This document shows, one piece after another, positions 4,398 to 61,747 of a stretch of DNA of 64,000 bases. The translations under genes and the position numbers were made by a program. The notes beneath the pieces are model-generated. The model was not told the origin of the DNA and did no database searches. It saw only the letters and a program-made list of their open reading frames with translations. The first letter of the stretch is position 1, and every line of letters begins with the position of its first letter. The stretch is from the IMG/VR virus record IMGVR_UViG_3300047994_000374, positions 248,001 to 312,000 of that record. One strand, 5' to 3'.

Positions 4398-4718
4398 TTA
4401 TGCGAAGATCATTAATTTTTTAAGTCTATTTGCCGTAATATCAAATGGCGTATTGTTTGGTAGCTTCATGATGATCCTATTTGTTTTTGCGTCAATTAAT
4501 TCGCAAAAATGAACATCCAATTCTGATGTAAAATCCCAGCTTACATAATATTGTTTTTTATTTAATTTGACAGATTTTGAGGCAATATTGTAGAAAAATA
4601 TTCCTTGCTCATCCTTAAAATAAATATAAAACATCTTACATGGAGTGCATTCGGCAGATTTATTTTCATCGTAGAAGATGTTTTCTTTACAACGGAGACA
4701 TTTTAGATGGATTTTCAT
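4398..4718 (-). CDS. Small zinc-ribbon hypothetical protein
   Basis: CLRC...CTPC motif; ATGA overlap with the upstream gene. Confidence 0.6.
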   Translation of the reverse strand: MKIHLKCLRCKENIFYDENKSAECTPCKMFYIYFKDEQGIFFYNIASKSVKLNKKQYYVSWDFTSELDVHFCELIDAKTNRIIMKLPNNTPFDITANRLKKLMIFA

Positions 4719-17271: not shown

Positions 17272-18642
17272 TTAGGGTAATTTTGCCTTTTTCTTTAACC
17301 TTATAATAGTGTCTCTAGAAACTCCGTAAGCGTTTCCAATCTCTTTTAATGTCCTATTGTCATTTAATATAGATGTTATTTGTTCATTTGTAAAATCTTT
17401 ATAGTTAGGATTTTTTATAGCAATGCCGGCTTCTTTTTTAATTCTTGTAATCACTCGGCGCGTGGAATTAAAAGTCTTTGCAATTTCGATGAGGCTTCTT
17501 TTATCTGCAATAATAGCTTTAACCTGATCTTCGTTAAATTCAACTTTATTTCTAGGTTTTTTAAATTTTACATATGTTCCCATTTTTGTCTTTAATCTTA
17601 CTATTGTCTGTTGCGAGCAATTATAAATTTTAGCTATTTGCTCATATGGACGAGGATCGTATGCTATATCTATTTTTTGTTGATCGGTAAAATTAATAAC
17701 ATTTGGTTTTTTTGTTATGTACCCTGCGGCTTTTTTGACGCGCACAATAACTGAATCAATAACGCCAAGATCGCGAGCAATTGTACTTAGAGGACGTTTA
17801 TCAGCTATAATGACATCTATTTGATCTTGTGTAAATTTCCTCTTTCCTTTATAATTAGGTTTTCGTGATATTAGGTCTCCATAGTTCAATAATCTTAACC
17901 CATGCTTATTACAATATCGAATGCCATCAATTATTTTATAGGGCTGATAGGCGCCACTGACATCACAATTTGGAGCATTGCATTTTAATTCGCCAGTAGC
18001 TTCTTTTTCCTGTAATTTTTCTGCCCAAACTTCTTTTAAGGATATGACTCTCTTTGCAATAGTTTCTTCTGATTGGACTTTCCCTGTAAGAGCCTCTGAT
18101 TGATGCTTTCTCATTTCATCTGTCCAAATTACTGGGTTAGCCAAACGAGCCCTGCTAAGCGTTTCTGATTGCTCTGGTGTGCGCTTTTTTCCTAAACCAG
18201 GGTGACCTTGAGTTGCAATTTGATTGAACATAGCTTGACGAGCTTTTTCATTTAACTCTTCTCTTTTATCTATAGGGATTGAAGCGTGCCATGCGCGCAT
18301 AGCCTGCCTCCATTCTTCGGATTTTGGAGCATTCATTCCACCGTGTGTTGCATTATACCCTTTTCCGTGCTGTACATAACTGCTATACTGTTTAACTAAT
18401 TCTGTTTCAAGTTCATTTGCATTATCTTGTCCCTTACAAGACGCAATAATTTTGAATTCAAAATTATGATTACCATGTTTTTTTATAGCAAAATGAAATG
18501 GTACTTTTGGATTAGCTGCGTCTCTACAGTGCGCTCTCCACCGCGTATTTGGATTTACTGTTTGTCCAATATATACTTTTTTATTTATAACACATGTAAT
18601 GCAATAAAGATAAATAATCCGAGATTCAATTTCAATTGTCAT
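17272..18642 (-). CDS. GIY-YIG homing endonuclease with NUMOD3-like and tandem HTH repeats
   Basis: IYLYCIT...KVYIGQT...RW..H...ELE...GYN; four C-terminal 'FT.DQ...I..D.R....IA' repeats. Confidence 0.88.
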   Translation of the reverse strand: MTIEIESRIIYLYCITCVINKKVYIGQTVNPNTRWRAHCRDAANPKVPFHFAIKKHGNHNFEFKIIASCKGQDNANELETELVKQYSSYVQHGKGYNATHGGMNAPKSEEWRQAMRAWHASIPIDKREELNEKARQAMFNQIATQGHPGLGKKRTPEQSETLSRARLANPVIWTDEMRKHQSEALTGKVQSEETIAKRVISLKEVWAEKLQEKEATGELKCNAPNCDVSGAYQPYKIIDGIRYCNKHGLRLLNYGDLISRKPNYKGKRKFTQDQIDVIIADKRPLSTIARDLGVIDSVIVRVKKAAGYITKKPNVINFTDQQKIDIAYDPRPYEQIAKIYNCSQQTIVRLKTKMGTYVKFKKPRNKVEFNEDQVKAIIADKRSLIEIAKTFNSTRRVITRIKKEAGIAIKNPNYKDFTNEQITSILNDNRTLKEIGNAYGVSRDTIIRLKKKAKLP

Positions 18643-32070: not shown

Positions 32071-35031
32071 TTACAACCTTTTTTCAACATACCCGCCCAA
32101 AACTAATGGCTTGTCGCGGTTGGTGATACTTCCTTGAGCATGCGGATTCATGTTTGTAAAAGAATTTGTAACTAAAAATCGATAAGCTATATAAGCATTG
32201 AGAAGCGCCATCATTCCGTCGTTTGGAGTGCTGCCTTTAACATAATGAATGGTCGGATCGCCACCATTTCGGGATATAGATGGCTTAATTTCCATACTGC
32301 AACAATGTTCAATTAACCATCCAACCTTATCATAATCTCCGTAAGGAAAACGAATCATACCCTTTTTCATTTGCTCATATAATTCTGCAATATAAAAATC
32401 TCTTTCAAATATCATTTCTTTAGGAAACGAGTCCTGGGTGTATTTAATATGTCCTGGAGCGTTAATTTTATTATGAGCGCGAGAAACTAAATAACGATCT
32501 CCATACATATTATGAAGTGTCACTGAAAAATCGTTTGAATATCCGATATCTCCTACTGCCAATTGAACATTGTATTGTCGCATTAATTGATCAATGATGC
32601 CTTTTTTGGATTCAGGATCATTCTTTTTAAATTTATGCGCATATTCAATGGAAAGTAAATTCGGACCCTTTGCTAATAAAATAACTGCAGTAGAATAAGA
32701 TTGCCCCGTCGTCTTTACTTTTTCTGGATTGGCAAGCTGTTCTAAATCGTTGCGCAGACCGTAGTCTAATCCCATAACTACAATTTGCTGTTGCTCTGTG
32801 TTGCTATCTATTTTTGCGCGATATTTTCTACCTACATCACCACAATATTCTCTAATTTCATCCGTAGTAATTGGACTTGTATCTCCAGCGAAAAATTCTC
32901 CAAGAACTTCATTTTGAAATACACGTTCGGTGTTAATTGGATGGACGCCTGGTTTTTCAGCAAGAATTGCTTCTTTACTGAACATTGGCATATATAAAGA
33001 GTTAATATGAAATCCAACCATTTTACAATCGGGGTCTTTATCATCTTTAAGCGCGATCCATTTGCCTCGTTCTGCGGCGGCGCGCTTATCTTGTTCATGT
33101 CCACATTTTGTACATTTAACTATAAATGTATGAAGCCATATTTTTTCCCAGTCATCAGAACCTGGAGTATACAGTGGAAAAAAATCTTTACAATTTTCAC
33201 ATCCCAAAAAATAATATTGTTGGGAAGAAGTTTGCCACATTTTATGGAACGATGATCCTTGCTTACGAGGCGTACCGAACATAACTTGTAATCCTTGTGT
33301 CGGTTTGCCATATTTAGCTGTAATTAAAATTTTCTGTGAGTTACCAATAGCAACATCAGTTGTTCTTTGTACTTCATCGAAAATCATTACATCTGCCGTA
33401 TTATGAGTTGGAATACATTGTTTTGTTATCAAATATAGGCGCGATGAGCTATCAACAGTTATACAGCGCATTGGAATGGATGGAATTGGTTTAACATCCA
33501 CAATAAATCTTTGATGTGCTTTTTTTGAAATATTTTTAATATTTGCTAGTTTTCGCTTCATTCTAAAAACTGGAAGCGTAGTCATAAACCGGACCCGATA
33601 TTTATCTTTATACTGAACGTCGTATCTCCAACTTTCTCTTTTATAAATTTTTGCTTTTATGCCTAGGCTTAAAACCAACTCTAATACTTGTCTTGCTAAA
33701 TTCTCTCTCACCTGAACAAACTCTACATTTCCTAATTTATCTACGTGCCCATCAGTATCAAGAAGTCCTTGTAATAGCGCCAACCGTTGATCAAATGACC
33801 CCCTCATATAAATGTCTGGAATGTGTTTATTATACCATTGCCCCTTTTTATTATGAGTATTTTTTAGTTGCTTTAATAATGTAAGCTTATTTGTCAATCC
33901 ATCTATTCTATACGCGGCGGATCTTGATGGAACTTTACTAAAAGAAGTTATTCGTGGCACCAAGGAAGAAGGAATAACATGATGAGAATAATTTGAAAAA
34001 ATTTCTGGATCGGCACTTTCAATATGTCCTGCCTGACACCCGTCACCAAGCCACAATCCTAATAAATAAGGATCTAATGGTAAATCTTTTTCTGGGTAAT
34101 TTAAAGGCTTACAATTTGGAATAGAATGGTTGCTTTCTTTCCCATATCTTAAAGTTTCGAAAATTTGTTTCGTATTTTTAATTTTTGGAATTGGCATATT
34201 TGGAGTTAGACCAACTTTAAAACTATTTGTATTTAATCGATCGCGTTTCGTATGTGTTAGCCAAAGGTGCTCTGCACAAGCATCTACTGTCGTATCATCA
34301 TCAAATGTTATTCTATACGCCTCGGGAGAAAAATTGATTGGATGTAATTTCGTAACTCGACAAATGTTACCATTTTCGTCGAACAATTCATCATTTTCTT
34401 TTAGATCGCGAAGTTTAATAAAACCCGATGGCGTTGGGATATCAATCTCCAATGAAAGTTGACGCCCCATGATGCGATCGCCGTCTAAACCGCAGGACTC
34501 AACCCATAAGTGATTACCGTTTTTAAATTGTTTGAAATGAAGTGAATTACCTTGGTCTGTTCCATCATCAAGCATCAGTTGCATATATGATTTTGCTTTA
34601 CCAGATTTATCTGGCTTTGAGCCTTCGGGAACAATAGAACCATTTATCATTTGAGATAATTTTGTTTTTGAATAAGCAGCTGCAAGCTCACCGAAAGGAA
34701 AAATATGCATTACTCGAATAGGTGGCTTTCCATTAACACCAAACAAACCACTTCCCATAAAATACATTTCAAGAGCCGACGCCATGGTAGTATTTCCCAC
34801 CTGGCGCGATTTTACAACAATCATAGGTTTCGCGTTGGGTTCTAATGCTTTGACACCGAAATACCTATACATATCTCCATAGGGTTTATATCCATTGCCG
34901 TGAATTCTGAATGGAGAACCATCTAATGTGAGATATTTTTCTACGAAATAAATAGGATCAATATTTAATAGAGAATTCTTTAATTGTTCAAATGTTTCAT
35001 TTTGTTCTTGTTTATCCGACTTGCTTTTCAT
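32071..35031 (-). CDS. terL: Terminase large subunit (GpA-like) with intein
   Basis: Walker A KSRQVGNT, Walker B VMIFDE, motif III GTP, CxxC pairs, nuclease GLDYG...ND. Confidence 0.9.
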   Translation of the reverse strand: MKSKSDKQEQNETFEQLKNSLLNIDPIYFVEKYLTLDGSPFRIHGNGYKPYGDMYRYFGVKALEPNAKPMIVVKSRQVGNTTMASALEMYFMGSGLFGVNGKPPIRVMHIFPFGELAAAYSKTKLSQMINGSIVPEGSKPDKSGKAKSYMQLMLDDGTDQGNSLHFKQFKNGNHLWVESCGLDGDRIMGRQLSLEIDIPTPSGFIKLRDLKENDELFDENGNICRVTKLHPINFSPEAYRITFDDDTTVDACAEHLWLTHTKRDRLNTNSFKVGLTPNMPIPKIKNTKQIFETLRYGKESNHSIPNCKPLNYPEKDLPLDPYLLGLWLGDGCQAGHIESADPEIFSNYSHHVIPSSLVPRITSFSKVPSRSAAYRIDGLTNKLTLLKQLKNTHNKKGQWYNKHIPDIYMRGSFDQRLALLQGLLDTDGHVDKLGNVEFVQVRENLARQVLELVLSLGIKAKIYKRESWRYDVQYKDKYRVRFMTTLPVFRMKRKLANIKNISKKAHQRFIVDVKPIPSIPMRCITVDSSSRLYLITKQCIPTHNTADVMIFDEVQRTTDVAIGNSQKILITAKYGKPTQGLQVMFGTPRKQGSSFHKMWQTSSQQYYFLGCENCKDFFPLYTPGSDDWEKIWLHTFIVKCTKCGHEQDKRAAAERGKWIALKDDKDPDCKMVGFHINSLYMPMFSKEAILAEKPGVHPINTERVFQNEVLGEFFAGDTSPITTDEIREYCGDVGRKYRAKIDSNTEQQQIVVMGLDYGLRNDLEQLANPEKVKTTGQSYSTAVILLAKGPNLLSIEYAHKFKKNDPESKKGIIDQLMRQYNVQLAVGDIGYSNDFSVTLHNMYGDRYLVSRAHNKINAPGHIKYTQDSFPKEMIFERDFYIAELYEQMKKGMIRFPYGDYDKVGWLIEHCCSMEIKPSISRNGGDPTIHYVKGSTPNDGMMALLNAYIAYRFLVTNSFTNMNPHAQGSITNRDKPLVLGGYVEKRL
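33400..34461 (-). mobile_element. 354-aa intein with LAGLIDADG domain, class-3 type, starting with Gln
   Basis: GR|QLSLEIDIPTPSG...ACAEHLW...LLGLWLGDG...LLQGLLDTDG...MRCITVD...IPTHN|T. Confidence 0.88.
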
Positions 35032-43963: not shown

Positions 43964-45550
43964 TTACCCCAAAAAGATTTTAGCATTCATAAATGATGCG
44001 CCTTCGTAAGTTTCTGACATTCCTCTGCGATATAATGGACGACAATTTCCATGGTCGTCTTGATATACCTTATGAGCTGGAAGTCCGGTATGTGAACAAA
44101 TGGGATGTTCTGAAACGGCACTTTTAACCAATGCTGAACATTTGGTCTCTTCGACTGGTTTAACTCCAGCAAGGGCGCTCTTATAAATAGCAAATCCACT
44201 CGCATAAGCTTTTTCATCTTCACCATGAGCTAATACATTGAGGGCATCTTCAGCTTTTACTAAATTACCCTCTAAAACAGCTTCTCGAATATTGTTAATA
44301 ATTTCGCTTGGCTTTAAAGATGCCATTGCTGAAGAAACCGCGGCAACACGGATATCTGAAGCATTTTCAGAAACAAGCTCATTAATTCCAGCTTTATCAA
44401 ATGTTTTTACTGACCCGTTGCATAAAAGAACATTTGGTTTAATCATCGTTCCATTTGCAAATTTAACTGGAACAGTAAAAGCAACTCGACCACCATTTAA
44501 TGATACTGCGTAAAATAAAGTGGTCTCATCTGATTTGGCAAGCTTCATTTGAGGATGAGAGTGACCAAAACTGGCTAATTCACGAGCTAAATGTCGATGA
44601 GCAGCCGATACTTTTTCTTCGCCGAAATTCCATGAAGCAATTCCAAGTGGTGATTCAAATTTCTTTTCAAAGCTTTCAAATTCGTCAGAGGTCGTTTCCA
44701 TCTCAGACACTGCTGCATTGACGATCTTTTGACCTTCAGAGCTATTTGCGAAGAAGCTGGAAGTTCCGTAGCTTGAATTATTAAAACGCGCTAAAGCCAA
44801 TTCTGCTTCGCTTATGGTTGAACTCAAAACACCTAACACAATCTCACTTCCAATTTTAAGCTGTGAGCCCGCATTTGAAGTAATGTAGTTACGAATGTTT
44901 GTGTTGTTTAAATCTTGTGGTCCAGTGTTACCCATAAATACAGAGGCTTCTTTAACATCTGATCTAACAACTTCAACGGGGACATAAAAACTAGTTAAGC
45001 CTTTTGGAGTGTCATAATCTGCTTTAACAATGATAAATTTCTCATTTCCACTACCAACAGACAAATGTTGTGGGTTAAGGTTCCAAAGTTCAAGGGCGTT
45101 GGCGACGATTTTAAGGGCTCGATTAGCTGTACTTTGAGCATAAGTTTTAAGTGGAGTGTCCTTATCAAGCGCTGAATTTAATGCATTTGCGAGGATTTGA
45201 TCGCCAATTTCGTAGGTTGGAAGCTCTGCTGAATCATCTCGCTCCTTATAAGTCACTGGGGAAGCGGCTGGAGTAATACCTAATTCTTCTGCAAAAATTT
45301 CTGCAGCTTCAGTTCCATAAGAAAATAGCTTATTGTATAAATTACGAAAGTCTGCTCGACGGATTAAATCAGTTCCATTTTCAGACATCTTCTCGACGAC
45401 TCGATATAACTGACCTAGCGTCTTATCATGAGGGGCAACTTCAATGGCATGAGCTAATTTGATAGTCAATGCTGTGGTTGATAACTTATGATTGTCGTCA
45501 ATAGATTTCACTGTCGCAGTAACTAACTGATTAAATTTATCTAAGCTCAT
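43964..45550 (-). CDS. Hypothetical protein with internal duplicated domain
   Basis: SFYVPVEV and AFTVPVKF repeats; Cys/His-containing C-terminus. Confidence 0.7.
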   Translation of the reverse strand: MSLDKFNQLVTATVKSIDDNHKLSTTALTIKLAHAIEVAPHDKTLGQLYRVVEKMSENGTDLIRRADFRNLYNKLFSYGTEAAEIFAEELGITPAASPVTYKERDDSAELPTYEIGDQILANALNSALDKDTPLKTYAQSTANRALKIVANALELWNLNPQHLSVGSGNEKFIIVKADYDTPKGLTSFYVPVEVVRSDVKEASVFMGNTGPQDLNNTNIRNYITSNAGSQLKIGSEIVLGVLSSTISEAELALARFNNSSYGTSSFFANSSEGQKIVNAAVSEMETTSDEFESFEKKFESPLGIASWNFGEEKVSAAHRHLARELASFGHSHPQMKLAKSDETTLFYAVSLNGGRVAFTVPVKFANGTMIKPNVLLCNGSVKTFDKAGINELVSENASDIRVAAVSSAMASLKPSEIINNIREAVLEGNLVKAEDALNVLAHGEDEKAYASGFAIYKSALAGVKPVEETKCSALVKSAVSEHPICSHTGLPAHKVYQDDHGNCRPLYRRGMSETYEGASFMNAKIFLG

Positions 45551-45559
45551 TTGTCCCTT

Positions 45560-46021
45560 TTAGAGTAATTCTGGATACTTCTTATATGCGTTTATTTTGG
45601 CAGTTGGGCTTAATTCATTCAACAGCGCTTTCACTAATTTCTTGCTTTCGGCAAGTTTTGAAGGAAGATAGACTTCAGCTTCATTGAGTTCCGTTGGAGG
45701 GATGCCCAATTTCTGTGATGCTAAACAAACGAGTGGATCACCTTTATAGGAAACTTGTAATTGACCAGCTGATTTAACAAACTTTACGGACCAGTCATTT
45801 GCCGTTTTAACTTCAAGGTCTTCATCACCATAAAGGGCAACAATATAGTCACCATCATCAGAGCTTTGAACTTCCCAAAGCTGAGCTGCCTTATCTGCGT
45901 CTTTGAATCGTACTACGCCGAACGCAATTGACTCGAGTTGGTCTTTAACATCTGCCAACCGATATGCTTTCTTAGTAATGGTCGTATGTAAAGCGTCATA
46001 ATTCACTGTAAATTTTGGCAT
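45560..46021 (-). CDS. Hypothetical protein
   Basis: 153 aa; KKAY, KTAN and KSAG motifs. Confidence 0.7.
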   Translation of the reverse strand: MPKFTVNYDALHTTITKKAYRLADVKDQLESIAFGVVRFKDADKAAQLWEVQSSDDGDYIVALYGDEDLEVKTANDWSVKFVKSAGQLQVSYKGDPLVCLASQKLGIPPTELNEAEVYLPSKLAESKKLVKALLNELSPTAKINAYKKYPELL

Positions 46022-46110: not shown

Positions 46111-46610
46111 TCACCATTTTTGGGCACGGATTTCATTCATACGATTTAAAATCGCTAAAATTCTTTCATCTGTCTCAATAACTTTTTTAAGCTTCTTGAT
46201 AGTTCCCCCATAAGAAGTTTTATTGTTACTGTAATCGACATTGCCCCAAAGCGAAAAGGGTCCCCAATAAAATAATTTATTTATTTTTATTTTATTGGGG
46301 ACCAGAACGATTTGGTTACAGAACTTTGATTAATTCCTAATCCAAGAGCTACTTCTTGCTGGGTTTTTCCAGACGCGTATGATTTCATCACTTCTCTTTG
46401 TCTCTCTGTCAAATTTTCCTCAACAATTCTCCAAAACTCTACTTTCAATTGATCTTCCAAATCAAGTAATTCTTCATTATATTCAAATGGGTTCAAAATA
46501 TCACTAATACTATCCGCATTCGAAAATGCTTCCATCATATCATTACTGAACATCTTTTCTAAAAGTAAAAATTGATATTTGCTCGAGCGGCCTTTTTTTT
46601 TCTCAATCAT
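46111..46610 (-). CDS. Sigma-70 region-4/LuxR-type HTH regulator interrupted by a 56-nt hairpin segment (147 aa if skipped)
   Basis: LTERQREV....GKTQQEVA..LGINQSSVTKS, stop at 46287; the frame resumes as SLWGNVDYSNNKTSYGGTIKKLKK...QKW* to 46111. Confidence 0.75.
46259..46303. repeat. Perfect 17-bp inverted repeat with 11-nt loop inside the sigma-like gene
   Basis: GGTCCCCAATAAAATAA / TTATTTTATTGGGGACC. Confidence 0.95.
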
Positions 46611-46679
46611 TTCGCCTACTTAGGTTATATTGTTTATTTGTTTCTTCTTATTATATCTTTAATCGTATTTAAGCTACAA

Positions 46680-47465
46680 TTAAATATTCTCTTCTTCACT
46701 CACCCTGTCTTCAAAACATATATCATTAAAACTACGAATATTTTTATTTTTACTCAAATACTCATCAATATCTTTGTATTGTGGGCTCAAGTATAGATCC
46801 GTTACTTTTGCATGTTTCCCGAATTTTTTATGAATTAATTTTCTACCCTTTAACCCCGCTTCATCATTATCCAATAAAACAAATATATTTTCGGTGTATC
46901 GAGTGATTAGACTAAATTGATAAGCGGTCATATTCGAATTTCCTAAAGCGACAATATTATCAATACCATGTTCCAAACCTTTAATGACATCCAATTGTCC
47001 TTCTACAATAATCACACAATCTTTTTCAAGTATATTATTTTTATTTTCAAATAATCCAAAAAGATGATTTCCTTTAGTAAAAATGGTATTCTTGTATTTA
47101 GAAATATTTTGCGCTTTATATTCGACTTCAGGTAATAGAGTTCTACCAACCAAAGCTACGACATCGCCATATGCATTTTTAAATGGTAGGATAAGAGGAT
47201 AATTTTCGAAATAAGAGAATATTAAATCTCTTTGACACCAAGCGTCTGAAATCGTCTTGGAGTAACAAAGGCGATTTTTCTTTACCACATCAATATCTAC
47301 CATATTAAACAATACGTCCATTTGATCGGCACGAGGAAAATACCCAAACTTAAACAACTCTTGGCTATGCTCTGTCAAACGATCATTGATATATTTTTTA
47401 GCTTCCTCGGCTGTTGGGAAATTATTTAGCAGATAGTGGCAAGCCTCTACAATAGGTTCAAGCAA
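46680..47465 (-). CDS. dnaG: DnaG-type primase catalytic/TOPRIM domain, no N-terminal zinc finger
   Basis: GR....KYKN; VEGQLDV; LDNDEAG; KDIDE. Confidence 0.88.
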   Translation of the reverse strand: MLEPIVEACHYLLNNFPTAEEAKKYINDRLTEHSQELFKFGYFPRADQMDVLFNMVDIDVVKKNRLCYSKTISDAWCQRDLIFSYFENYPLILPFKNAYGDVVALVGRTLLPEVEYKAQNISKYKNTIFTKGNHLFGLFENKNNILEKDCVIIVEGQLDVIKGLEHGIDNIVALGNSNMTAYQFSLITRYTENIFVLLDNDEAGLKGRKLIHKKFGKHAKVTDLYLSPQYKDIDEYLSKNKNIRSFNDICFEDRVSEEENI

Positions 47466-47799
47466 TGTCTTTACCTGCCGATTTTAGCATTTCTTTGAGC
47501 ATGATTTTGAAAGGTTCCGTCAGATGTTCATGCTCTTTCAAACACGAGAAGCAGACAATTTTTTTATCCACTTCTTTAGGTCGTCCTTCTTTGCCGCATT
47601 TCGAACACTTTACGAAAAAAGAACCAGCTACTTTTGGTTTAAATTGTTTGAGCGATTTCATTTGGACTTTTGTGAATTGAGTGATGTTAGTCATTTCTTT
47701 TTCACAAACTGAACAATAAACGATATTTGTTTTGGGGTCGATGTAGGGTTCGTTTTGCTTGTTACAACCTTTATTTTGACAATTCGCTGAGAACGGCAT
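47458..47799 (-). CDS. Double zinc-ribbon protein
   Basis: CQNKGC/CSVC and CSKC/CFSC. Confidence 0.7.
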   Translation of the reverse strand: MPFSANCQNKGCNKQNEPYIDPKTNIVYCSVCEKEMTNITQFTKVQMKSLKQFKPKVAGSFFVKCSKCGKEGRPKEVDKKIVCFSCLKEHEHLTEPFKIMLKEMLKSAGKDIA

Positions 47800-48763
47800 T
47801 TGCTTTTCCTTTTAATAACTCAATGAGGTCTGATGTATCTTCCGGATAATCAATATGGAGAATAACTTTTTGCTCTCCCTTTCGATCTACTCCAACATTT
47901 TTAATTATGATTTCTTCTTTGTTTTTGGAAAGAGGCGGAATTGAAATTTCCTTATCGCCCAACACTGTTTTAACCGACCGTGTTGTTCCAGTTAAGGCAT
48001 CAAGAAGTGAAATATTATGATTTAAAATAACATAGCCATCTTTTAATGATAAATCAGGATCGAGTGCAACATTTATTTTACAATTGGCGTCGGTGAATTG
48101 ATCTTGCACACCCATAAAGGAACCAACAAAATTTCCGTACCCTTGCATCTTTAAAACGCTCTCTGAAGTTACGCCTCCGGGGATTTTAACAGAAACCGAC
48201 ACTTCATGATCTACAGTTCCGGCAGCCTTACATGGTTCACATTTTTCTACATTTGATCTACCATGACATAAAGGACAAACGGATTGAAACATCATATTTC
48301 CTTTTTGCGAAATAACTTGTCCTTGTCCATGGCACTTTTTACATCCGTTATTTAATTTAATGGTTCCTTGTCCATTGCATTTTTGACATTTATTTTTTCT
48401 TGTAAATTTCAAATCTTTTTTGCAACCTAAAACAGAATCTTTAAATGAAATATCAATGTTCAATTGAATGTGAGATGCTGGTCGCGTTTGTTGTTGAAAT
48501 GGGTTGCTACTGCCAAATGGATTAAAACCTCCGCCCCAACCATGATAATACTCTTCTGGAATGAAATCTTCACGGTCATTTCCTTTGCCACTTTTAATGC
48601 ACTCATAAGCTTGATTAATAGCCTTGAATTTATCTTCAGCACCAGGCTCTTTATTGATATCAGGGTGAAACTGTTTTGTGAATTGGCGATATTTCTTTTT
48701 CGCCTCTTCTGGGGTAGCGGTTTCTTCAAGTTCCAATAATTTATAAGCTTCAGTAAGTTTCAA
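47771..48763 (-). CDS. dnaJ: DnaJ chaperone
   Basis: J-domain HPD; CxxCxGxG repeats; C-terminal domain. Confidence 0.92.
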   Translation of the reverse strand: MKLTEAYKLLELEETATPEEAKKKYRQFTKQFHPDINKEPGAEDKFKAINQAYECIKSGKGNDREDFIPEEYYHGWGGGFNPFGSSNPFQQQTRPASHIQLNIDISFKDSVLGCKKDLKFTRKNKCQKCNGQGTIKLNNGCKKCHGQGQVISQKGNMMFQSVCPLCHGRSNVEKCEPCKAAGTVDHEVSVSVKIPGGVTSESVLKMQGYGNFVGSFMGVQDQFTDANCKINVALDPDLSLKDGYVILNHNISLLDALTGTTRSVKTVLGDKEISIPPLSKNKEEIIIKNVGVDRKGEQKVILHIDYPEDTSDLIELLKGKANAVLSELSK

Positions 48764-50567: not shown

Positions 50568-50876
50568 TTATTTTGCTGCGTATACTAGATTTTGAATAAG
50601 TTGAACTCGATGCTGTGGAATCATAACTTCAACTAATAATTTTTGTAATGTGCCCGCGAGGATTTTTGAATAATCTTTAAGCACATCTTCAGTTTTTTCA
50701 TCTGTAAAAATTCCCTTTACAGTGGTCATTCCATTTATAAAATCAGGTTTATCCAATGATATAAATAAAGATGGTTTTTTGCCACCATCAAGCACAATGA
50801 GATGTGGAGGTTTTTTTGCAAAAGAAGAAGTGGGATGGATAAGATTTGTGATTCCAACAACGACATCTTCACTCAT
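50568..50876 (-). CDS. Hypothetical protein
   Basis: 102 aa, coupled to recA. Confidence 0.65.
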   Translation of the reverse strand: MSEDVVVGITNLIHPTSSFAKKPPHLIVLDGGKKPSLFISLDKPDFINGMTTVKGIFTDEKTEDVLKDYSKILAGTLQKLLVEVMIPQHRVQLIQNLVYAAK

Positions 50877-51888
50877 TATCTAATCCTTCCTCATCCCAAC
50901 CCGTCACATCGGACTTAGTCTTTACATCTTTCGCCAAATGAACGCCGTCCGCCGAGATAACTAAATCCATTTCGGCGATGCACTCATCTCCATCGAACAT
51001 GTGATTCTTTTTTACTTTTGCACGGGTCACGATGCCATACTTATATTTTTCTCCACTCTTTACTCGTGTTAAGTCTTGTTTGCGAGAAAGCTGAATAATA
51101 ACACTCGAAAGATAATAAATTTCACCGCCGCCTTTTTCAGTCTGGCCAACTGAACCAATATTGGCATAAGTTTGATTGATAATGAGCGTTGCAATCGTAT
51201 CTTCACCTGTATCACGGTCAAAATATTTATTTGCTAATTTATTGATTTTTCGAATGGCATAAGCATTTTCCTTTGCCGTAACACCTGGTTGTCTTGAAAA
51301 ATCTTCAGTGCCATCTTCTTTGTCTTCAGTTGAATTGACTGAAGCTCCAACAGAATCCCAAACAACTAAAATCTTAGTTTTTGGATCTATTTCTTTTGCC
51401 GCATGAATAAAATGGGCTACAGCTTTAACACCTTCAATAATATTATTCGTGTCAACAATTAAAAGTTCATTTGATTTACCACCGATTTTTTCATCAAATC
51501 GTGGAGCCGAAAACTTACGCTCAGAATCCCAAAGAATGACAAGAACATTTTGATCTTGCGCTTCCTTCATAAATACCATAGCGTGTGTTGATTTGCCTGA
51601 GTCTGGCTTTCCAGAAATTTGAATGATGCGACCCATTGGCAATCCAGGTAATCCAGTGAGCGCCTTCCAATGATCTCCGCCATTCCAAACGACATAATCT
51701 TTCTTATCTGTCGATCGAACAAGTGAACTTCCAGTTGCTAATTGATTGGAAAGCCCGCCTTCTTTTTTGCCATACGCTTCTTGCGCTTTTTTGACAATTT
51801 TGTTAATATCAAATTTTGATGCAACTTTTTTTTCTGCTTTTACTGGTTCTTTATTTTCTACTACTTCGGCTGTGGTGCTTTTTGGCAT
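50869..51888 (-). CDS. recA: RecA/UvsX-like recombinase
   Basis: GLPMGRI..ISGKPDSGKST; WDSE; WDSVG; IINQ; KVKKN. Confidence 0.9.
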   Translation of the reverse strand: MPKSTTAEVVENKEPVKAEKKVASKFDINKIVKKAQEAYGKKEGGLSNQLATGSSLVRSTDKKDYVVWNGGDHWKALTGLPGLPMGRIIQISGKPDSGKSTHAMVFMKEAQDQNVLVILWDSERKFSAPRFDEKIGGKSNELLIVDTNNIIEGVKAVAHFIHAAKEIDPKTKILVVWDSVGASVNSTEDKEDGTEDFSRQPGVTAKENAYAIRKINKLANKYFDRDTGEDTIATLIINQTYANIGSVGQTEKGGGEIYYLSSVIIQLSRKQDLTRVKSGEKYKYGIVTRAKVKKNHMFDGDECIAEMDLVISADGVHLAKDVKTKSDVTGWDEEGLDNE

Positions 51889-53988: not shown

Positions 53989-55242
53989 CTATTCATCATT
54001 TTCATCGTCTAATTCAATTAAACCTTCATTATACAGAATGTCTTCCAAATGATCTTGAATGTCTTTGGGTTCATTGAATTTTATCTCTTCGACAGGCTCT
54101 GATTTATTTTTAAGGGCTTTCATTGAAATCTTTTTGGATTTCAAATCGTTTGGCATAGATGGAGGCATGGCGAGATTAAATAAATCATAAAGAATAATTC
54201 CCATATTATCTTCATAGTTATTTGTGGTTCCAGAAAAATGAATACCGAGTCCAGCTTCAAATTTTGCTTTTTTATTGATTGCTTTCATATTCTGTTGAAG
54301 TTTCTCCCACTGTTCTGGAAAAATGGTAACGGAACATTGATCGCCTGTTTTATCTTCAATAGTTGCCTTAACCATCGTCTTACCGTAATTTTTCGAACCT
54401 TCTTTTTTAATTCGGAACTCAAAAAAATCCTTTACAATACCCTTCATAGATTTAAAAGTCGTTTTCTCTTTAGCCTTTTTAATCTGTTGAACAAGCGTAT
54501 GGTCATCTTCGAAAAATGCGCCATAAGCCTTGGACGGTTTACAAATAAATCCTTCTCCCAAATAATGATGTTCAAGCGCATATAGTTCTGGTTTCGTCCA
54601 TTCAATATCGGTCGGCCAAGGATACTCAAACTTTTCTTTTGCAGGATCATGTTTTTTTAACCAAGATTGGAGTTTCTTGCGATAGTCTGAACAGTAAAGA
54701 AACATGGCTTTTCTAGTAATCGTTTTTGTTGCGAAAATATCAAGTGCCCCTGATGCTGCAAGGGCTTGAATAGAATTGGCTCTCACCGCCTTTGAACTAA
54801 TACGATGCATGAAATCAAAGAAGCTAGTAAAAGGACGCTTTGCTAAAATATCCAAAATAGCATCGTCGCCGACAAATTTAATTGCATCAAGTCCTGTGAT
54901 TAATTTATCTCCCTCAACAATATAGGTAAGTTGAGCTTTGTTTAATTCGGGCGGAACAATTTTTACTTTATGTTGACGGATTTCTTTTTTGATTTTGTCG
55001 ATATTTGCTTTGGCATCAGGTGTGGCTGATTTTACTTCTGCCATAAGATTTGCGAGAAGAAACTCAATTGGGAAGTGGGCTTTTAGATAGGCTGTTTTAT
55101 ATCCAGTCATTGAATAAAGAATACTATGTGAATTGGATGTTAGCATGCCGTTAGCCAGATAAAATTGATGATCTGGATGATCTACTTCAAGGTCGTAGGT
55201 TTGAAAACTTCCAATCTCTTTAACTGATTTAATGTTACTCAT
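53989..55242 (-). CDS. dnaE: DNA polymerase III alpha C-terminal half, preceded by a 37-aa C-intein (55132..55242)
   Basis: MSNIKSVKEIG..QTYDLEV...HQFYLANGMLTSN|SHS..Y...Y.TAYLKAHFP.EF; HhH and OB-fold motifs. Confidence 0.92.
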   Translation of the reverse strand: MSNIKSVKEIGSFQTYDLEVDHPDHQFYLANGMLTSNSHSILYSMTGYKTAYLKAHFPIEFLLANLMAEVKSATPDAKANIDKIKKEIRQHKVKIVPPELNKAQLTYIVEGDKLITGLDAIKFVGDDAILDILAKRPFTSFFDFMHRISSKAVRANSIQALAASGALDIFATKTITRKAMFLYCSDYRKKLQSWLKKHDPAKEKFEYPWPTDIEWTKPELYALEHHYLGEGFICKPSKAYGAFFEDDHTLVQQIKKAKEKTTFKSMKGIVKDFFEFRIKKEGSKNYGKTMVKATIEDKTGDQCSVTIFPEQWEKLQQNMKAINKKAKFEAGLGIHFSGTTNNYEDNMGIILYDLFNLAMPPSMPNDLKSKKISMKALKNKSEPVEEIKFNEPKDIQDHLEDILYNEGLIELDDENDE

Positions 55243-56410
55243 ATGCTTTACCTATTTTATAAATCCCTGGTATTTTGTTATTTAATATTTCTAATAATTG
55301 AGCGATACACTCTGGTTTAAAATATGATTTTTCTATTTTATTTTTATCTACGTATTGATCATCTGATATTCTAATTAAAGTCCAATTCTTTTTTATAATT
55401 AAATCTTCGAGCTGGCGATCTTTAATTATAACCACTTTCAGCACGTCTTCTCCAAAAATCGGTTTAAAATGAGTTGGACCATCAAACTCTATATAAATTC
55501 TTTTTTTAACATCCATCATATCTATTTGTGTTTTAGATGTAAAAATTTTAGCTTTTATAAATTTATTTCTTTTAAATTTAAATCCTTTAAGTTCAAGCAC
55601 GAATTCGAACAATTTCTTTTCTGGTTTGCTCTGCCAACTATTTAACATTGGCTTTGTGCATTTATTATAAAAATCATCTGGATAACCATCTCGCCAAACT
55701 TGAAGTTGTTTAGTTCGGCTTTCAATAATATCTGGGCGAGCGGAGGTTATTTTGGCTGTATCAGAGGATTTTTGACGCATAACATCACTTTGATTGACTT
55801 TGGTCATGACGCCAGCTCTACGGGTTCTATCTTCTGGATTTGCCATAATTGCTGCACTTACTGCCTTGCTCATTTTTTCACAATATTCTGTTAAATCTTC
55901 GCCGTTTTCCTTCGCCCTATTAATCCAGTTGCCAGTAATTTTATTAGCTTCTGAGTGTGTTTTTGAAGATTTATTAGAAATAATTTTCCCATGATTTTCC
56001 ATATATTCTTTTTTGCTTAAATTGTGCACTAATTTTATATGCCCGGCGAGGCGTTTGGCGTGAACATTGCAAATTTTACAAACAACATAATCTTCATCTT
56101 CTATAAGATTAGCATAGTATAAATTGCACTTACTTTCACATTTTTTGCGATTATCTAATACCAAATATTCCGATGCACAAAATTTACATTTGAATTTTTC
56201 ACGATCTTTATAATACGAACTGCCGCATCCAAATCGACACTCAAAATCTTTTAACTTTAATATTTCCGTAAGCGATTGTGATGTATTGCACCCACACATA
56301 AATTTAAAGTTAACTTTTGTCTTACTTCCTTTAAACTTTTCTAATAATGTTAGATTATTTCTATATTTTTCAGGTATTCTTTCTATATATTCTTTTAACG
56401 ATTTCGACAT
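55235..56410 (-). CDS. Free-standing Vsr/DUF559-like homing endonuclease between the dnaE halves
   Basis: C..C...H...H zinc finger; SKPE...ID...IEFDGPTH...DR...WTLIRI. Confidence 0.8.
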   Translation of the reverse strand: MSKSLKEYIERIPEKYRNNLTLLEKFKGSKTKVNFKFMCGCNTSQSLTEILKLKDFECRFGCGSSYYKDREKFKCKFCASEYLVLDNRKKCESKCNLYYANLIEDEDYVVCKICNVHAKRLAGHIKLVHNLSKKEYMENHGKIISNKSSKTHSEANKITGNWINRAKENGEDLTEYCEKMSKAVSAAIMANPEDRTRRAGVMTKVNQSDVMRQKSSDTAKITSARPDIIESRTKQLQVWRDGYPDDFYNKCTKPMLNSWQSKPEKKLFEFVLELKGFKFKRNKFIKAKIFTSKTQIDMMDVKKRIYIEFDGPTHFKPIFGEDVLKVVIIKDRQLEDLIIKKNWTLIRISDDQYVDKNKIEKSYFKPECIAQLLEILNNKIPGIYKIGKAYE

Positions 56411-56414
56411 TTCA

Positions 56415-59108
56415 TTATCCTATAATAATAGATAAATTTAAATCTATTATTTTATGAAGTGGCAGCATTTCATTAGTCTCTTTAACGCGAAATTTATGAT
56501 CCATCGTGCACTTTACTTTTTCGCCCGTTGTCAATTCTACTTCAACTAATGGTAAGGTTCCGTGATCATGTTTATTTAAAATTTCAACAAAAATGTCTTT
56601 TTTCATTTTTTCGTCTCTTGATCTAACAAATTCACCAGCCACTACATTTTCTATGGTTTTTTGTTGAAGGAAAATACCTTCACTATTATATATATCGACC
56701 ATTTCTAAAAAGTGCACTGATTTGTTGAACCCATACCCACCAAAATTTTCAATAACTTCCGTCCATATACGTTGGGCAATCATTTCTTGGACGCCATTTT
56801 TTACGCAATCAGCAATAAATTCTTCGCGGAGAGCTTGAATTTTTTTGGGATTTTTACCTTTATCCTTCGTCATCTTTCTTAAACGGTCAGCATCATTTAA
56901 ACTCCAACACGCCACATCTTGTGCCAAATAGAATAAAGATTCTTCATAAAGACCGAATCCGAATGTATTATTGAATGCTCGACCTAATTTTGGATGTAAT
57001 AAAGAGAAGGCTCGTTTTCCATCTTTTGTTAAAATGAAGTCCTTTCTCATGTCTCTGGCAGATGGGCGAGATAAAGAGTTAATGTAACTAATATCATTAA
57101 TTGATTTTGGCTTAATCTGTCGGCAAAGATCAATGGTGCCACCAGATGTTCCTAACTGAAAAACTCCATAAGTGTCGCCCGATGAGATTAAATCATAAGT
57201 TGCCTGATCATAGGCATCAAAATCAATCACTGGAACTTCTTTGCCTGCCTGTCTAATAAGTTCTTCTGTTTTACCAATTAAATCAAGCGTAGATAGCCCA
57301 AGAATATCAATCTTAACCATTCCATTTTCTTCGGACTTATCTTTATCATATTCAATGGCAAGTGTTCCATCTTTATCTTTTCTTAATGGAACCAATCCAG
57401 TCATAGGGCGTGAAGATATAATAATTCCGCCTGCATGCGTTGACCACGCCCTCATTTGTCCAGACAGTTTTTTATATTTAATGAATTCGGGATATCTTTT
57501 GCAATACTCTCCAAATAATGGGATTTTAGCCAATGCATCATCTATGGATTTAATTTCAGCGGGAATACAGTCAGCAACTTCATTTCCAATCCGAACAGCA
57601 TCTTCTTTAGAGCCGCCTAACTCGCATGCTCTAGCGATATCTTTAACATAAACCTTTGGAGTAATTGTATTTACATTGGAGACGTGAGCTACATTGTTTT
57701 CGCCATATTTGTTAATAAGATAGTTTTGAACTCTATCTCTGCCTGATGGAGCAATGTCAGAATCGACGTCGGGGAATGCAATCTTATCTTTATTTAAAAA
57801 ACGAGCAAAAATCAAATTATGTTGAATAGGATCGGCAGTATGAATATCTATTAGGTAAGCTAATAAAGATCCTCCTACAGATCCACGACCTTCATTTATT
57901 GGAATGCCTTGATTTCGTGCCCAATCAAGGAAATCGGCAACAATCAACATGTAGCTGGAAAAATCTCGAAACTCAATAACATCAAGCTCTTCAATTAATC
58001 TTGCACGATATTCCTCTTCTTTACCGACAGGAACTTTATTTTTAAACCCCAACTCACACTTATAGCGAAGGAATGCTTTATCTTCGCTTAATATTTTAAC
58101 TTCATTATTCTGCTCACTCAACCAAGCTAAAAATTCTTGATAATTCAATTCATCTTTTACTGGAAATATTGGAAGCTCTTTGCCTGATGGATTTGAAAAT
58201 TTGGGATCAATCCACTCCGGCTTTTCACACAAGTCAGAAAAATAAATTGAATTATCACAAAATTCTTGTGCTTGCGCCTCTCCGTAATTTCGAACAAAGA
58301 AACTCTTAACTTCTTCACCTGACTTCAAATAAAAGTCTTCAACTGGATACCTTAAACGGAAATTTGAATAGATAGTTTGATGACTTCCGATTGCCAAAAG
58401 GGCATCGTGTGTTTTAGCCTCGTCTTTGTGAAGATAATGAGTATTACAAGCTACTACAACTCGAATACCGTGCTTCTTACCTAAATTCGTAAGCTGTCTA
58501 TTTAAGAATACCTGATCAATTTCATCGTTATAAATATTCGATCCACGCTTCATATTATTGGGTTGGATTTCAATGCCCAAATTGTCGGCGAAAATATCTT
58601 TTAATCGCAGTAATGTTTTTTCAGCTTCATCTGGCTTTCTATTCATGAGAAGCTGGCTGATGATGCCATTGCCACATGCTGTTAAACAAATCAATCCTTC
58701 AGCATGTTCTTCTAACAACTTCCAGTCAATAATTGGATAAACGCGCTTGCCAAGAAATGATCCTTGATCGAAGCCTTTTTTATTAATGGTGAGAAGATTT
58801 CGATACCCTATTGCATTTTTAGCAATGAGAATGATATGCTTTAATTTATTTTGCTTTTTTGCATTGGATTCTTGCGCTTTTTTAGTAGCATCATCTAAGA
58901 AGTAACACTCCATACCGACGATAAGCTTGATACCTATTTCCTGTGATGCCTTCCAAGCCTCCCAGAAAGAACCTCCGCTTCCATGGTCCGTTATGGCGAC
59001 CGCTGGCATGCCTATCTCTTTGGCGCGCTTTAAAAGGTCTTTGGGAGAGATAATCGAATCTAAAATTGAATAATGCGTTTGATTGTGAAGCGATACGAAA
59101 TTGGTCAT
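56415..59108 (-). CDS. dnaE: DNA polymerase III alpha N-terminal half, followed by an N-intein (56418..56720)
   Basis: PHP domain H.QT.YSILD/TDHG; GRGSVGG; PDVDSD; ...GYGFNK|SVHFLEMV...CTMDHKF. Confidence 0.93.
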   Translation of the reverse strand: MTNFVSLHNQTHYSILDSIISPKDLLKRAKEIGMPAVAITDHGSGGSFWEAWKASQEIGIKLIVGMECYFLDDATKKAQESNAKKQNKLKHIILIAKNAIGYRNLLTINKKGFDQGSFLGKRVYPIIDWKLLEEHAEGLICLTACGNGIISQLLMNRKPDEAEKTLLRLKDIFADNLGIEIQPNNMKRGSNIYNDEIDQVFLNRQLTNLGKKHGIRVVVACNTHYLHKDEAKTHDALLAIGSHQTIYSNFRLRYPVEDFYLKSGEEVKSFFVRNYGEAQAQEFCDNSIYFSDLCEKPEWIDPKFSNPSGKELPIFPVKDELNYQEFLAWLSEQNNEVKILSEDKAFLRYKCELGFKNKVPVGKEEEYRARLIEELDVIEFRDFSSYMLIVADFLDWARNQGIPINEGRGSVGGSLLAYLIDIHTADPIQHNLIFARFLNKDKIAFPDVDSDIAPSGRDRVQNYLINKYGENNVAHVSNVNTITPKVYVKDIARACELGGSKEDAVRIGNEVADCIPAEIKSIDDALAKIPLFGEYCKRYPEFIKYKKLSGQMRAWSTHAGGIIISSRPMTGLVPLRKDKDGTLAIEYDKDKSEENGMVKIDILGLSTLDLIGKTEELIRQAGKEVPVIDFDAYDQATYDLISSGDTYGVFQLGTSGGTIDLCRQIKPKSINDISYINSLSRPSARDMRKDFILTKDGKRAFSLLHPKLGRAFNNTFGFGLYEESLFYLAQDVACWSLNDADRLRKMTKDKGKNPKKIQALREEFIADCVKNGVQEMIAQRIWTEVIENFGGYGFNKSVHFLEMVDIYNSEGIFLQQKTIENVVAGEFVRSRDEKMKKDIFVEILNKHDHGTLPLVEVELTTGEKVKCTMDHKFRVKETNEMLPLHKIIDLNLSIIIG

Positions 59109-60499: not shown

Positions 60500-61747
60500 T
60501 TAATCAATAATTTTAATTGTTTTTGTTACGAAATCCATTGCAAATTCATCTCTAATACGAGCAAACAAAATCTGTAAATACCCTGAATCTTGCATTTGCT
60601 TAATGATTTCATCCATGGGTTGTTGCACTTGTGTTTGCGCTAAATTCTGCTTAATCACTTCAAATACTTCTTGATCACTTAATTGTGCTTCTGGCTCATC
60701 TTCCCGAATCTTATCAAGGATCAGAGATAGTTTAACATTTTTCTCTGCAATGTCAAGGAAGCGAACCTTATCTTCATCTGACATTGTAGCCCAATCCATT
60801 TTGCTTTTTTGTGCTAAATATTGCGCTTCTGACAGTGACATCCAATTAGGAACATCAACTGTATTATCAGCGACTAAACGATTAGCCACCGCTTCGTTAA
60901 TGGCCGCTTTCGCACTGTTCGCGGTTCGGGCAGAGGCGGTTGAAGCAACAAGGGCACGAAGTTCTTCGAATGTGCTCTTGCCCATGTGTTGCGCAAGTTC
61001 ATCATTGAGCGGGCATGGTGTTGATTTTGCGCCAGTTACAAGCTTTACTTTGAAATGAACGGTTTTTCCAGCAATAGAAGGAAGACCACCTGCAGGAACA
61101 ACAATATCAAACTCACGTTCCTCGTCAGTTTTCATTCCAAGCAAATTGTCATCAAATCCAACGACTTGATTTTTACCAACCGTAAGCATTTCTCCAGTTG
61201 CGCAAAGACTATCAACTTTCTCTCCATCAACTGATCCTTCAAAGTCAATTAAAAGATTATCTCCGGTTTGAACGAAATCGTCATTTGAAAATGGAGTAAC
61301 ATCTCCAAACTTGACGCGAAGTTCTTGGAGCATTTTTTCTGCCATTTCTTCGGATGACATTGGGTCAGCTGGTTTTGGAACTTCCATATTCTTAAAATCG
61401 GCAACTTCAAAATCTGGCTTGGTCAGCATTTCGAATTCACATGAAAACTTTCCACTTTCCATTTTAAGTGATTTGAATTGTGGGGTACCGTGAGCACGAA
61501 GCTTCTTTTCAAAGATAGTTTCATGGTAAGCCGTTTCTGCAAGGGCTCGTTTGGTAGCTTCATCGATTTGAGTTCGATAATGCATATTAATTGCTTCAAG
61601 AGGCGCTTTACCATCACGAAACCCCTTAACTGGAGCTTTCTTAAAGGTATTTAAAACCTCAGCCCGCTTTGCTTGAATTTCAGTAGAATCTGCTTCATAA
61701 TGAACTTTTAACTTACACTTTTCGATTTCTTGAACTTGAATTTCCAT
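60500..61747 (-). CDS. tig: Trigger factor
   Basis: Ribosome-binding signature GFRDGKAP; FKBP-like domain GD...IDFEG.VDG...GF...L.GMK. Confidence 0.93.
   Translation of the reverse strand: MEIQVQEIEKCKLKVHYEADSTEIQAKRAEVLNTFKKAPVKGFRDGKAPLEAINMHYRTQIDEATKRALAETAYHETIFEKKLRAHGTPQFKSLKMESGKFSCEFEMLTKPDFEVADFKNMEVPKPADPMSSEEMAEKMLQELRVKFGDVTPFSNDDFVQTGDNLLIDFEGSVDGEKVDSLCATGEMLTVGKNQVVGFDDNLLGMKTDEEREFDIVVPAGGLPSIAGKTVHFKVKLVTGAKSTPCPLNDELAQHMGKSTFEELRALVASTASARTANSAKAAINEAVANRLVADNTVDVPNWMSLSEAQYLAQKSKMDWATMSDEDKVRFLDIAEKNVKLSLILDKIREDEPEAQLSDQEVFEVIKQNLAQTQVQQPMDEIIKQMQDSGYLQILFARIRDEFAMDFVTKTIKIID

Follow-up and report, generated by a model that had tools for sequence, protein, structure and literature searches.

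A hairpin coding gap in a predicted regulator gene of an uncultivated jumbo phage

In the present study, we examine a small gene for a predicted helix-turn-helix (HTH) regulator in a 394-kb phage contig from a moss metagenome, which is interrupted by a 56-nt hairpin that its intact relatives lack. We will show that the insert is real, and that related phages carry other hairpins at or close to the same spot, in several cases next to homing-endonuclease genes. On the basis of sequence alone we infer that ribosomes probably have to skip the gap, as they do in phage T4 gene 60. This reading is the best available one but is held tentatively, since several of the gene 60 hallmarks are not seen here.

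Anatomy of the interrupted gene

The window, that is, the whole stretch of DNA that was analysed, consists of 64,000 nt (positions 248,001 to 312,000 of the IMG/VR record IMGVR_UViG_3300047994_000374, a contig of 394,192 bp). All positions below refer to the window, and all features lie on the minus strand.

46680..47465 (-), DnaG-type primase gene, the conserved upstream neighbour.
46555..46680 (-), highly divergent patch (intergenic region plus the first ~18 codons) between the primase gene and the regulator, at the position where relatives carry a free-standing GIY-YIG homing-endonuclease gene; none is present here.
46308..46610 (-), upstream coding piece of 101 codons, from ATG 46610 to the candidate take-off Ser codon TCG 46310-46308, comprising the N-terminal region and the HTH helices up to the middle of the recognition helix.
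46302..46310 (-), TCG TTC TGG, take-off candidates (TCG 46310-46308, or TGG 46304-46302 overlapping the stem base).
46252..46307 (-), 56-nt insert, absent from about 170 uninterrupted homologues and ending with the candidate landing codon TCG 46254-46252.
46259..46303 (-), perfect 17-bp hairpin with 5' arm 46303-46287, 11-nt loop 46286-46276 and 3' arm 46275-46259; the zero-frame stop TAA 46289-46287 is at the top of the 5' arm.
46246..46254 (-), TCG CTT TGG, the matching landing candidates (TCG 46254-46252, or TGG 46248-46246).
46111..46251 (-), downstream coding piece of 46 codons plus TGA 46113-46111, comprising the rest of the recognition helix, a beta wing and two C-terminal helices.

The open reading frame that starts at ATG 46610 ends at the TAA within the hairpin and would encode 107 aa. 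Its last third matches Sigma70_r4 / GerE-type HTH models and phage 'sigma factor' PHROGs, with the match breaking off in the middle of the HTH, and the gene is thus assigned to the sigma-70 region 4 / LuxR-type HTH proteins. The inverted repeat begins four bases after TCG 46310-46308, and its arms are 100% complementary. As RNA it folds at -32.1 kcal/mol (z = -5.07), and none of 200 shuffled sequences folds as well. The TCG recurs exactly 56 nt downstream, and from the following CTT at 46251 a different frame runs 46 sense codons to the TGA. This downstream piece has no ATG, GTG or TTG until the Met near its end, and no ribosome-binding site. Joining TCG to TCG gives 101 + 46 = 147 codons, which is the modal length of the homologues (146-147 aa).

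The observation made in the initial annotation, a sigma-like regulator interrupted by a 56-nt stop-containing hairpin with matched flanking codons, therefore holds, with two small corrections. The in-frame TAA had been placed in the loop, whereas it constitutes the last three bases of the 5' arm, and the downstream frame is in fact open through the whole insert.

A search with the upstream piece returned hundreds of homologues from metagenomes, almost all of 146-147 aa and encoded on contigs of up to about 500 kb, which indicates an uncultivated jumbo-phage family. DNA similarity and tblastn searches against isolate phage genomes gave no match. Both pieces of the window gene align end to end with these proteins, which read NQSS(I/V)TKSL(N/H/W)GNVDY and, further on, YGG..KK without a break, and removal of 46307..46252 restores TKS-LWGNVDY. 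The homologues read S-L-(N/H/W)-G, which favours a TCG-to-TCG junction over TGG to TGG. The corresponding junction peptides would be SLWGNVDYSNNK for take-off at TCG and SFWGNVDYSNNK for take-off at TGG. In an AlphaFold model of an intact homologue (pLDDT above 90 over residues 50-140), residues 95-103 (QSSITKSLN) form the recognition helix, followed by a beta wing and two C-terminal helices. The window gene is cut inside that predicted helix.

Palindromes can arise as assembly artefacts, but an assembly artefact, such as a palindromic chimera, is effectively ruled out here. An independent Logan assembly of the source sample carries the whole 3-kb stretch unchanged in a 162-kb contig at depth 42.8. 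In addition, a contig from a different run, here called L299, represents a diverged strain that is 93% identical over 1.68 kb, with the strongly divergent patch at 46555-46680, and it carries the identical 56 nt at the same place.

Recurrence of hairpin inserts in related phages

We scanned 187 related loci (designated L with a number) for split alignments, followed by 80 more, and also examined truncated proteins (designated P) from the protein searches. About 170 of the 187 loci are uninterrupted. The interrupted alleles, with the length of the insert, the residues after which it falls and the flanking triplets, are the following.

Window and L299: 56 nt, after TKS, TCG / TCG.
L003 (P0004, the closest relative of the window protein), insert 1: 43 nt, after AKTL, CTT / CTC.
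L003 (P0004), insert 2: 53 nt, after LNG, GGA / GGA.
L141 = L144 = L197: 46 nt, after NQSS, TCG / TAG.
L190: 48 nt, in frame but with a TAA in the loop, after NQSS, TCG / TTG.
L191 = L192 = L301: 43 nt, after NQSS, TCG / TCG.
L193: a different hairpin, inside which the contig ends, after NQSS, TCG / second triplet beyond the contig end.

Several of these alleles recur in two or three samples, with SNPs elsewhere. The sites fall after residues 91, 97, 101 and 104, a 14-codon stretch of a 147-codon gene that lies in or beside the recognition helix, and they represent at least five independent events. Six neighbouring genes (DnaJ, a 113-aa protein, primase, a 153-aa protein, a 528-aa protein and RuvC-like), each present in 90-170 loci, show nothing comparable in the same type of scan. 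P0075/L194 turned out to be a plain deletion of ~25 nt and not a hairpin. A tree of the gene has too few columns and is mostly unresolved, and only the groupings of the window with L003 (SH-aLRT 90) and of L191 with L121 (91) are informative. The closest empty-site allele available is no nearer than 84% nt identity, and the insertions can thus not be dated.

Every complete insert is flanked by a 3-nt direct repeat that coincides with exactly one codon of the upstream frame. Three of the repeats are perfect, one is a CUU/CUC wobble pair readable by one tRNA, and two mismatch at the middle base. The repeats could be a by-product of the insertion mechanism; the codon register has a chance probability of about 0.01-0.04. 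The layout is shared by non-homologous inserts, and consists of the take-off codon, 0-7 nt, a stem of 10-17 bp (-19 to -37 kcal/mol), a 4-8-nt A/U-rich spacer and then the landing codon. The stem starts four nt after TCG in the window and at the third base of the take-off TCG in L141, L190 and L191. The inserts of these three loci are homologous, and while their loops and tails have diverged, the stem is kept with one or two compensated pairs. Quasi-palindrome correction at the DNA level could, however, also produce such compensation. All Ser take-off codons are TCG, which is the rarest Ser codon in the window (6.0 per 1000), and intact genes use it at those positions in only 6 of 107 and 14 of 107 cases.

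The 17-mer arm has no other copy in the window, in the 394-kb contig or in IMG/VR, apart from one chance single-arm hit in L001, and the L003 hairpin is likewise unique. Searches for the L141-type hairpin returned the same lineage, a terminator-like intergenic hairpin in a 432-kb relative, and unrelated generic palindromes in phages and bacteria, none of which is informative on host or mobility. The suggestion in the initial annotation of a MITE-like element is accordingly not supported, and neither is that of a relic intron, as the insert is too small and an Rfam search gave only sub-threshold hairpin noise. An intrinsic terminator was not called by a terminator scan; the tail CUUUUCGCUUU is only moderately U-rich, and the relatives lack U-tails. 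A tRNA scan of the window for a phage tRNA-Ser found none.

Free-standing GIY-YIG + NUMOD3 + HTH homing-endonuclease genes flank the interrupted gene immediately upstream and downstream in L141 and in L191/L301, and lie upstream in L193 and in the 16.6-kb P0004 contig. They are thus adjacent in 4 of 6 insert lineages, while the window and L190 have none nearby; the only GIY-YIG gene in the window is at 17272..18642. The same upstream gene is also found next to many intact copies (45 of 161 loci, and a downstream one in 21 of 193), and the association is therefore modest and not corrected for phylogeny or multiple testing. Within a 180-nt region, the column most associated with an upstream endonuclease is the first two bases of the second Ser codon of NQSS, the codon after which four of the inserts sit. 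It is switched from TCN to AGY in 15 of 34 endonuclease-positive unique intact alleles, against 11 of 73 negative ones (Fisher p = 0.0017, not corrected for phylogeny or for the 180 columns). One-base indels occur at the same spot in L228, which has the endonuclease gene upstream, in L300 and in P0219. These indicate that broken alleles may be tolerated, or they may be sequencing errors.

State of the downstream frame

We now consider whether the interrupted gene is still in use. The window and L299, which share the insert, differ at 2 of 243 positions in the upstream piece (both synonymous), at 0 of 56 in the insert, and at 6 of 138 in the downstream piece. The latter six are all third-position changes that are synonymous in the downstream frame, while none is synonymous in the other two frames, which by chance has a probability of about 0.001. 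For comparison, the 153-aa gene has 34 differences, of which 30 are synonymous. It should be noted that the divergence is mosaic, with 0.8% upstream of the insert against 4.3% downstream, and if the insert spread by gene conversion with short tracts, some or all of these substitutions may predate its arrival. Among L141, L190 and L191, synonymous sites of both halves are saturated (pS about 0.8), dN is 0.09-0.22, and no stop or indel has appeared in either half. The downstream piece is not decaying.

No insert-less twin of any interrupted allele, including those of the window, P0071 and P0004, was found among 5.8 billion predicted proteins, which include Logan assemblies. In the sequencing data examined, the source run confirms the insert, the assembly of a second moss sample has a hole over the gene, the RNA run has contigs only on the two downstream genes, and a further run carries a relative that diverges inside the gene. 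Two metatranscriptome runs that hold this phage (X10 and X11) carry 100%-identical contigs on 45000-45770. These data give no evidence on splicing or heterogeneity, either for or against.

Proposed translational bypassing and its alternatives

The interpretation put forward in the initial annotation, a candidate ribosomal bypass or recoding switch, is partly supported. Bypassing remains the best candidate, and it gains support from the relatives, with more hairpin inserts at the same spot, codon-register repeats and adjacent homing endonucleases. In our preferred explanation, the most conserved stretch of the gene, which codes for the recognition helix, is probably the target of free-standing GIY-YIG homing endonucleases, and splitting the target would protect a genome from cleavage, with synonymous switches, small indels and hairpin inserts all being escape variants. 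In the window genome the endonuclease gene would since have been lost, and the divergent patch at 46555-46680 may be the scar of that loss. To still make the regulator, ribosomes would most likely take off at TCG 46310-46308, skip the 56 nt, re-pair the peptidyl-tRNA at TCG 46254-46252 and resume at CTT, giving a 147-aa protein. What the analysis establishes is that the insert is real and absent from homologues, that inserts recur at a hot spot, that the flanking repeats are in codon register, that the stem is conserved and that the downstream frame is under selection, with the reservations given above. The link to endonuclease immunity, including any blocking of cleavage, and bypassing as the rescue mechanism, including the production of a full-length protein, are on the other hand inferred.

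The logic is that of the T4 mobA / gene 60 cassette and its homologues in myovirus topoisomerase genes, where the 50-nt gap protects against MobA and is bypassed by the ribosome. According to Manning and Atkins (bioRxiv 10.1101/2022.08.31.505936), such cassettes outlive the endonuclease and are sometimes associated with GIY-YIG genes instead; the bypass signals are summarised by Atkins et al. 2016 (PMC5009743). The window insert has in common with that system a gap of roughly 50 nt in a highly conserved coding stretch with coding sequence on both flanks, matched codons in register, a hairpin at the take-off codon, an A/U-rich 3' part, no premature landing triplet, and, in some relatives, neighbouring free-standing homing endonucleases; in the preferred reading, the insert also persists after loss of the endonuclease. 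A GGGGA run lies 7 nt 5' of the landing codon in the window, and G-runs lie 5-9 nt upstream in the L003 inserts, while no such Shine-Dalgarno-like element is present in L141, L190 or L191, where the 3' arm is C-rich. However, the A-site signal of gene 60 is absent. The codon after take-off is TTC in the window (10.5 per 1000 codons) and GGA, GCA, GGT, TGT or GTA in relatives, which is neither a stop nor a hungry codon, and the zero-frame stop comes only 6-14 codons later, near the loop. No dedicated nascent-peptide signal is evident, as the upstream peptide is simply the conserved protein. The stems of 10-17 bp are far longer than the compact T4 take-off stem-loop, and two of the six landing codons are mismatched, although relaxed matching is reported for mitochondrial byps (PMC5009743). 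The host gene is an HTH regulator and not the Topo II large subunit, the endonucleases are GIY-YIG and not HNH MobA, there is no sequence homology to the gene 60 cassette, and several non-homologous inserts occupy four sites instead of one conserved cassette. The window insert is thus not a member of that homologous family.

The byp elements of Magnusiomyces capitatus mitochondria are also short (27-55 nt), G+C-containing inserts that break frames in an A+T-rich genome, with an A/U-rich 3' part and, as in L003, sometimes more than one in a gene (PMC5009743; bioRxiv 10.1101/2022.08.31.505936). They number 81 per genome and depend on an unused A-site codon and on mitochondrial ribosomes, whereas here there is one gene per genome, bacterial-type translation and no multicopy family. 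[quoted passage not shown] MITE / REP-like palindromic elements, and the Rickettsia palindromic elements inserted in genes, share a short perfect palindrome with short flanking direct repeats within a coding region, but the window hairpin is single copy, is not in frame and, in the preferred reading, is not translated as part of the protein.

Among the alternatives, all of which we regard as unlikely, the strongest is that the hairpin, like the 1-nt indels, is an endonuclease-resistant scar that inactivates a dispensable regulator and persists through homing drive or drift, with only the 107-aa product being made. Interrupted alleles are indeed rare (about 1-2% of more than 600 homologues) and patchily distributed on the poorly resolved tree, the ~25-nt deletion also occurs in this gene, and both the missing A-site signal and the mosaic divergence would be consistent with this scenario. 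On the other hand, the six synonymous changes, the conservation of both halves in every carrier at saturated synonymous divergence, the codon register of the repeats, the persistence of the insert in two diverged strains without an adjacent endonuclease, and the near-universal presence and strong conservation of the gene in the family all speak against it. Somewhat less likely is removal at the nucleic-acid level. A perfect palindrome flanked by short direct repeats is the classical substrate for slippage deletion during replication, which could act as a DNA switch, and the shared geometry and the patchy distribution are compatible with repeated precise loss. However, only the insert-bearing form was assembled and no insert-less twin was found, slippage or splicing would not require codon register, no known RNA family or ribozyme matches, and revertants should sweep in the absence of an endonuclease if the insert were costly, yet two diverged strains keep it. 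Excision from the mRNA with religation is the less likely form of this scenario. A structure-specific cut at the stem base followed by religation, that is, an unconventional protein-catalysed mRNA splicing in a phage, is very unlikely, but would explain why no A-site stop, nascent-peptide signal or exact landing codon is needed and why non-homologous hairpins of the same geometry all work.

Other translational routes were also considered and are more doubtful still than a knockout or excision. A -1 slip at A-AAA-TAA, where tRNA-Lys could re-pair next to the stop, would lead into the downstream frame, which is open through the insert in the window, and give a 166-aa protein with 19 extra residues. 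Alternatively, termination near the loop could be followed by reinitiation to give two polypeptides; L191 and L003 have an in-frame ATG inside the hairpin, and L190 has TTG and L141 has ATT at the resume position. The slip could work in the window only. Neither route is general, since in L141 the downstream frame is closed by TAG right before the resume codon, the in-frame insert of L190 holds a TAA, and the window lacks a start codon or ribosome-binding site for the downstream piece. Moreover, a 19-aa insertion or a cut inside the recognition helix should destroy DNA binding.

In current annotation, such genes are called as truncated proteins of 101-118 aa. If the gene is simply knocked out, the finding still maps a probable endonuclease target hot spot, which would be of modest interest. 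Natural translational bypassing is known from very few systems, namely T4 gene 60 and its homologues, the Hau3 terminase and Magnusiomyces mitochondria. If ribosomes skip the gaps described here, this would be an independent phage case, in which at least five separately acquired, non-homologous hairpins sit at four sites of one gene, none with a stop codon at take-off, and together they would form a natural mutational series for asking which features are truly needed for a ribosome to hop. It would also generalise the idea that homing endonucleases drive 'immunity' inserts into essential coding sequence and that recoding pays the cost, and would extend it to GIY-YIG enzymes and uncultivated jumbo phages.

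Other genes of the window

The stretch that carries the interrupted regulator also encodes endonuclease domains, an apparently split polymerase, chaperone genes and a RecA-like protein, which are located as follows (minus strand throughout).

4715..6823 (-), a 702-aa ORF with a LAGLIDADG_3 domain
17272..18642 (-), a 456-aa free-standing GIY-YIG endonuclease with a C-terminal sigma-70 region 4 HTH
32071..35031 (-), the large terminase ORF (986 aa), with a LAGLIDADG_3 domain at residues 414-474
47771..48763 (-), a full DnaJ (J domain, zinc finger and C-terminal domain)
50869..51888 (-), a RecA-like protein
53989..59108 (-), DNA polymerase III alpha, apparently split
60500..61747 (-), a trigger factor

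The LAGLIDADG_3 domain within the terminase looks like an intein or an inserted endonuclease. The GIY-YIG gene, on the other hand, is the only one of its kind in the window, and it lies far from the interrupted regulator. In the case of DNA polymerase III alpha, an 897-aa ORF holds the PHP, NTPase and finger domains, and it is followed by a 391-aa ORF without any Pfam hit and by a 417-aa ORF with the HHH_6 domain. An imperfect 16-nt inverted repeat was found at the first of these junctions (56418-56457). As to the trigger factor and DnaJ, chaperone genes are unusual cargo for a phage.

A plant/moss metatranscriptome run (X10) contains contigs that are 100% identical to the window at 45000..45256 and 45485..45770, that is, on the 528-aa and 153-aa genes just downstream of the regulator. 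Since an RNA library can also carry DNA, this shows the presence of the phage in that sample without proving transcription.

Variation in and around the regulator

When the window is compared with L299, a diverged strain that carries the identical hairpin insert, the intergenic region and the first ~18 codons of the regulator (46555..46680) are found to be almost unalignable, although the two strains are 97-100% identical on either side. This patch is located where relatives carry a GIY-YIG gene.

One-base indels were found exactly in or next to the Ser-Ser and Lys-Ser codons of the recognition helix, which is the same hot spot as that of the hairpins. They occur in two related loci, L228 (1460-1475) and L300 (2780-2790), and in the homologous protein P0219. 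L228 has the endonuclease gene upstream, while L300 comes from a long-read assembly and its indel could be an error. Another altered allele, P0075 (locus L194, 520-550), has a ~25-nt deletion that removes the conserved GG..KK segment and shifts the frame, and this is an ordinary broken copy or an assembly error.

A related hairpin outside the coding sequence

In L200, a 432-kb relative whose regulator gene is intact, a hairpin with the same core as the L141-type insert, L141 being one of the interrupted relatives, sits just after a stop codon (326-356). Similar hairpins therefore exist as intergenic 3' structures in these phages, and they could be the source of the inserts.
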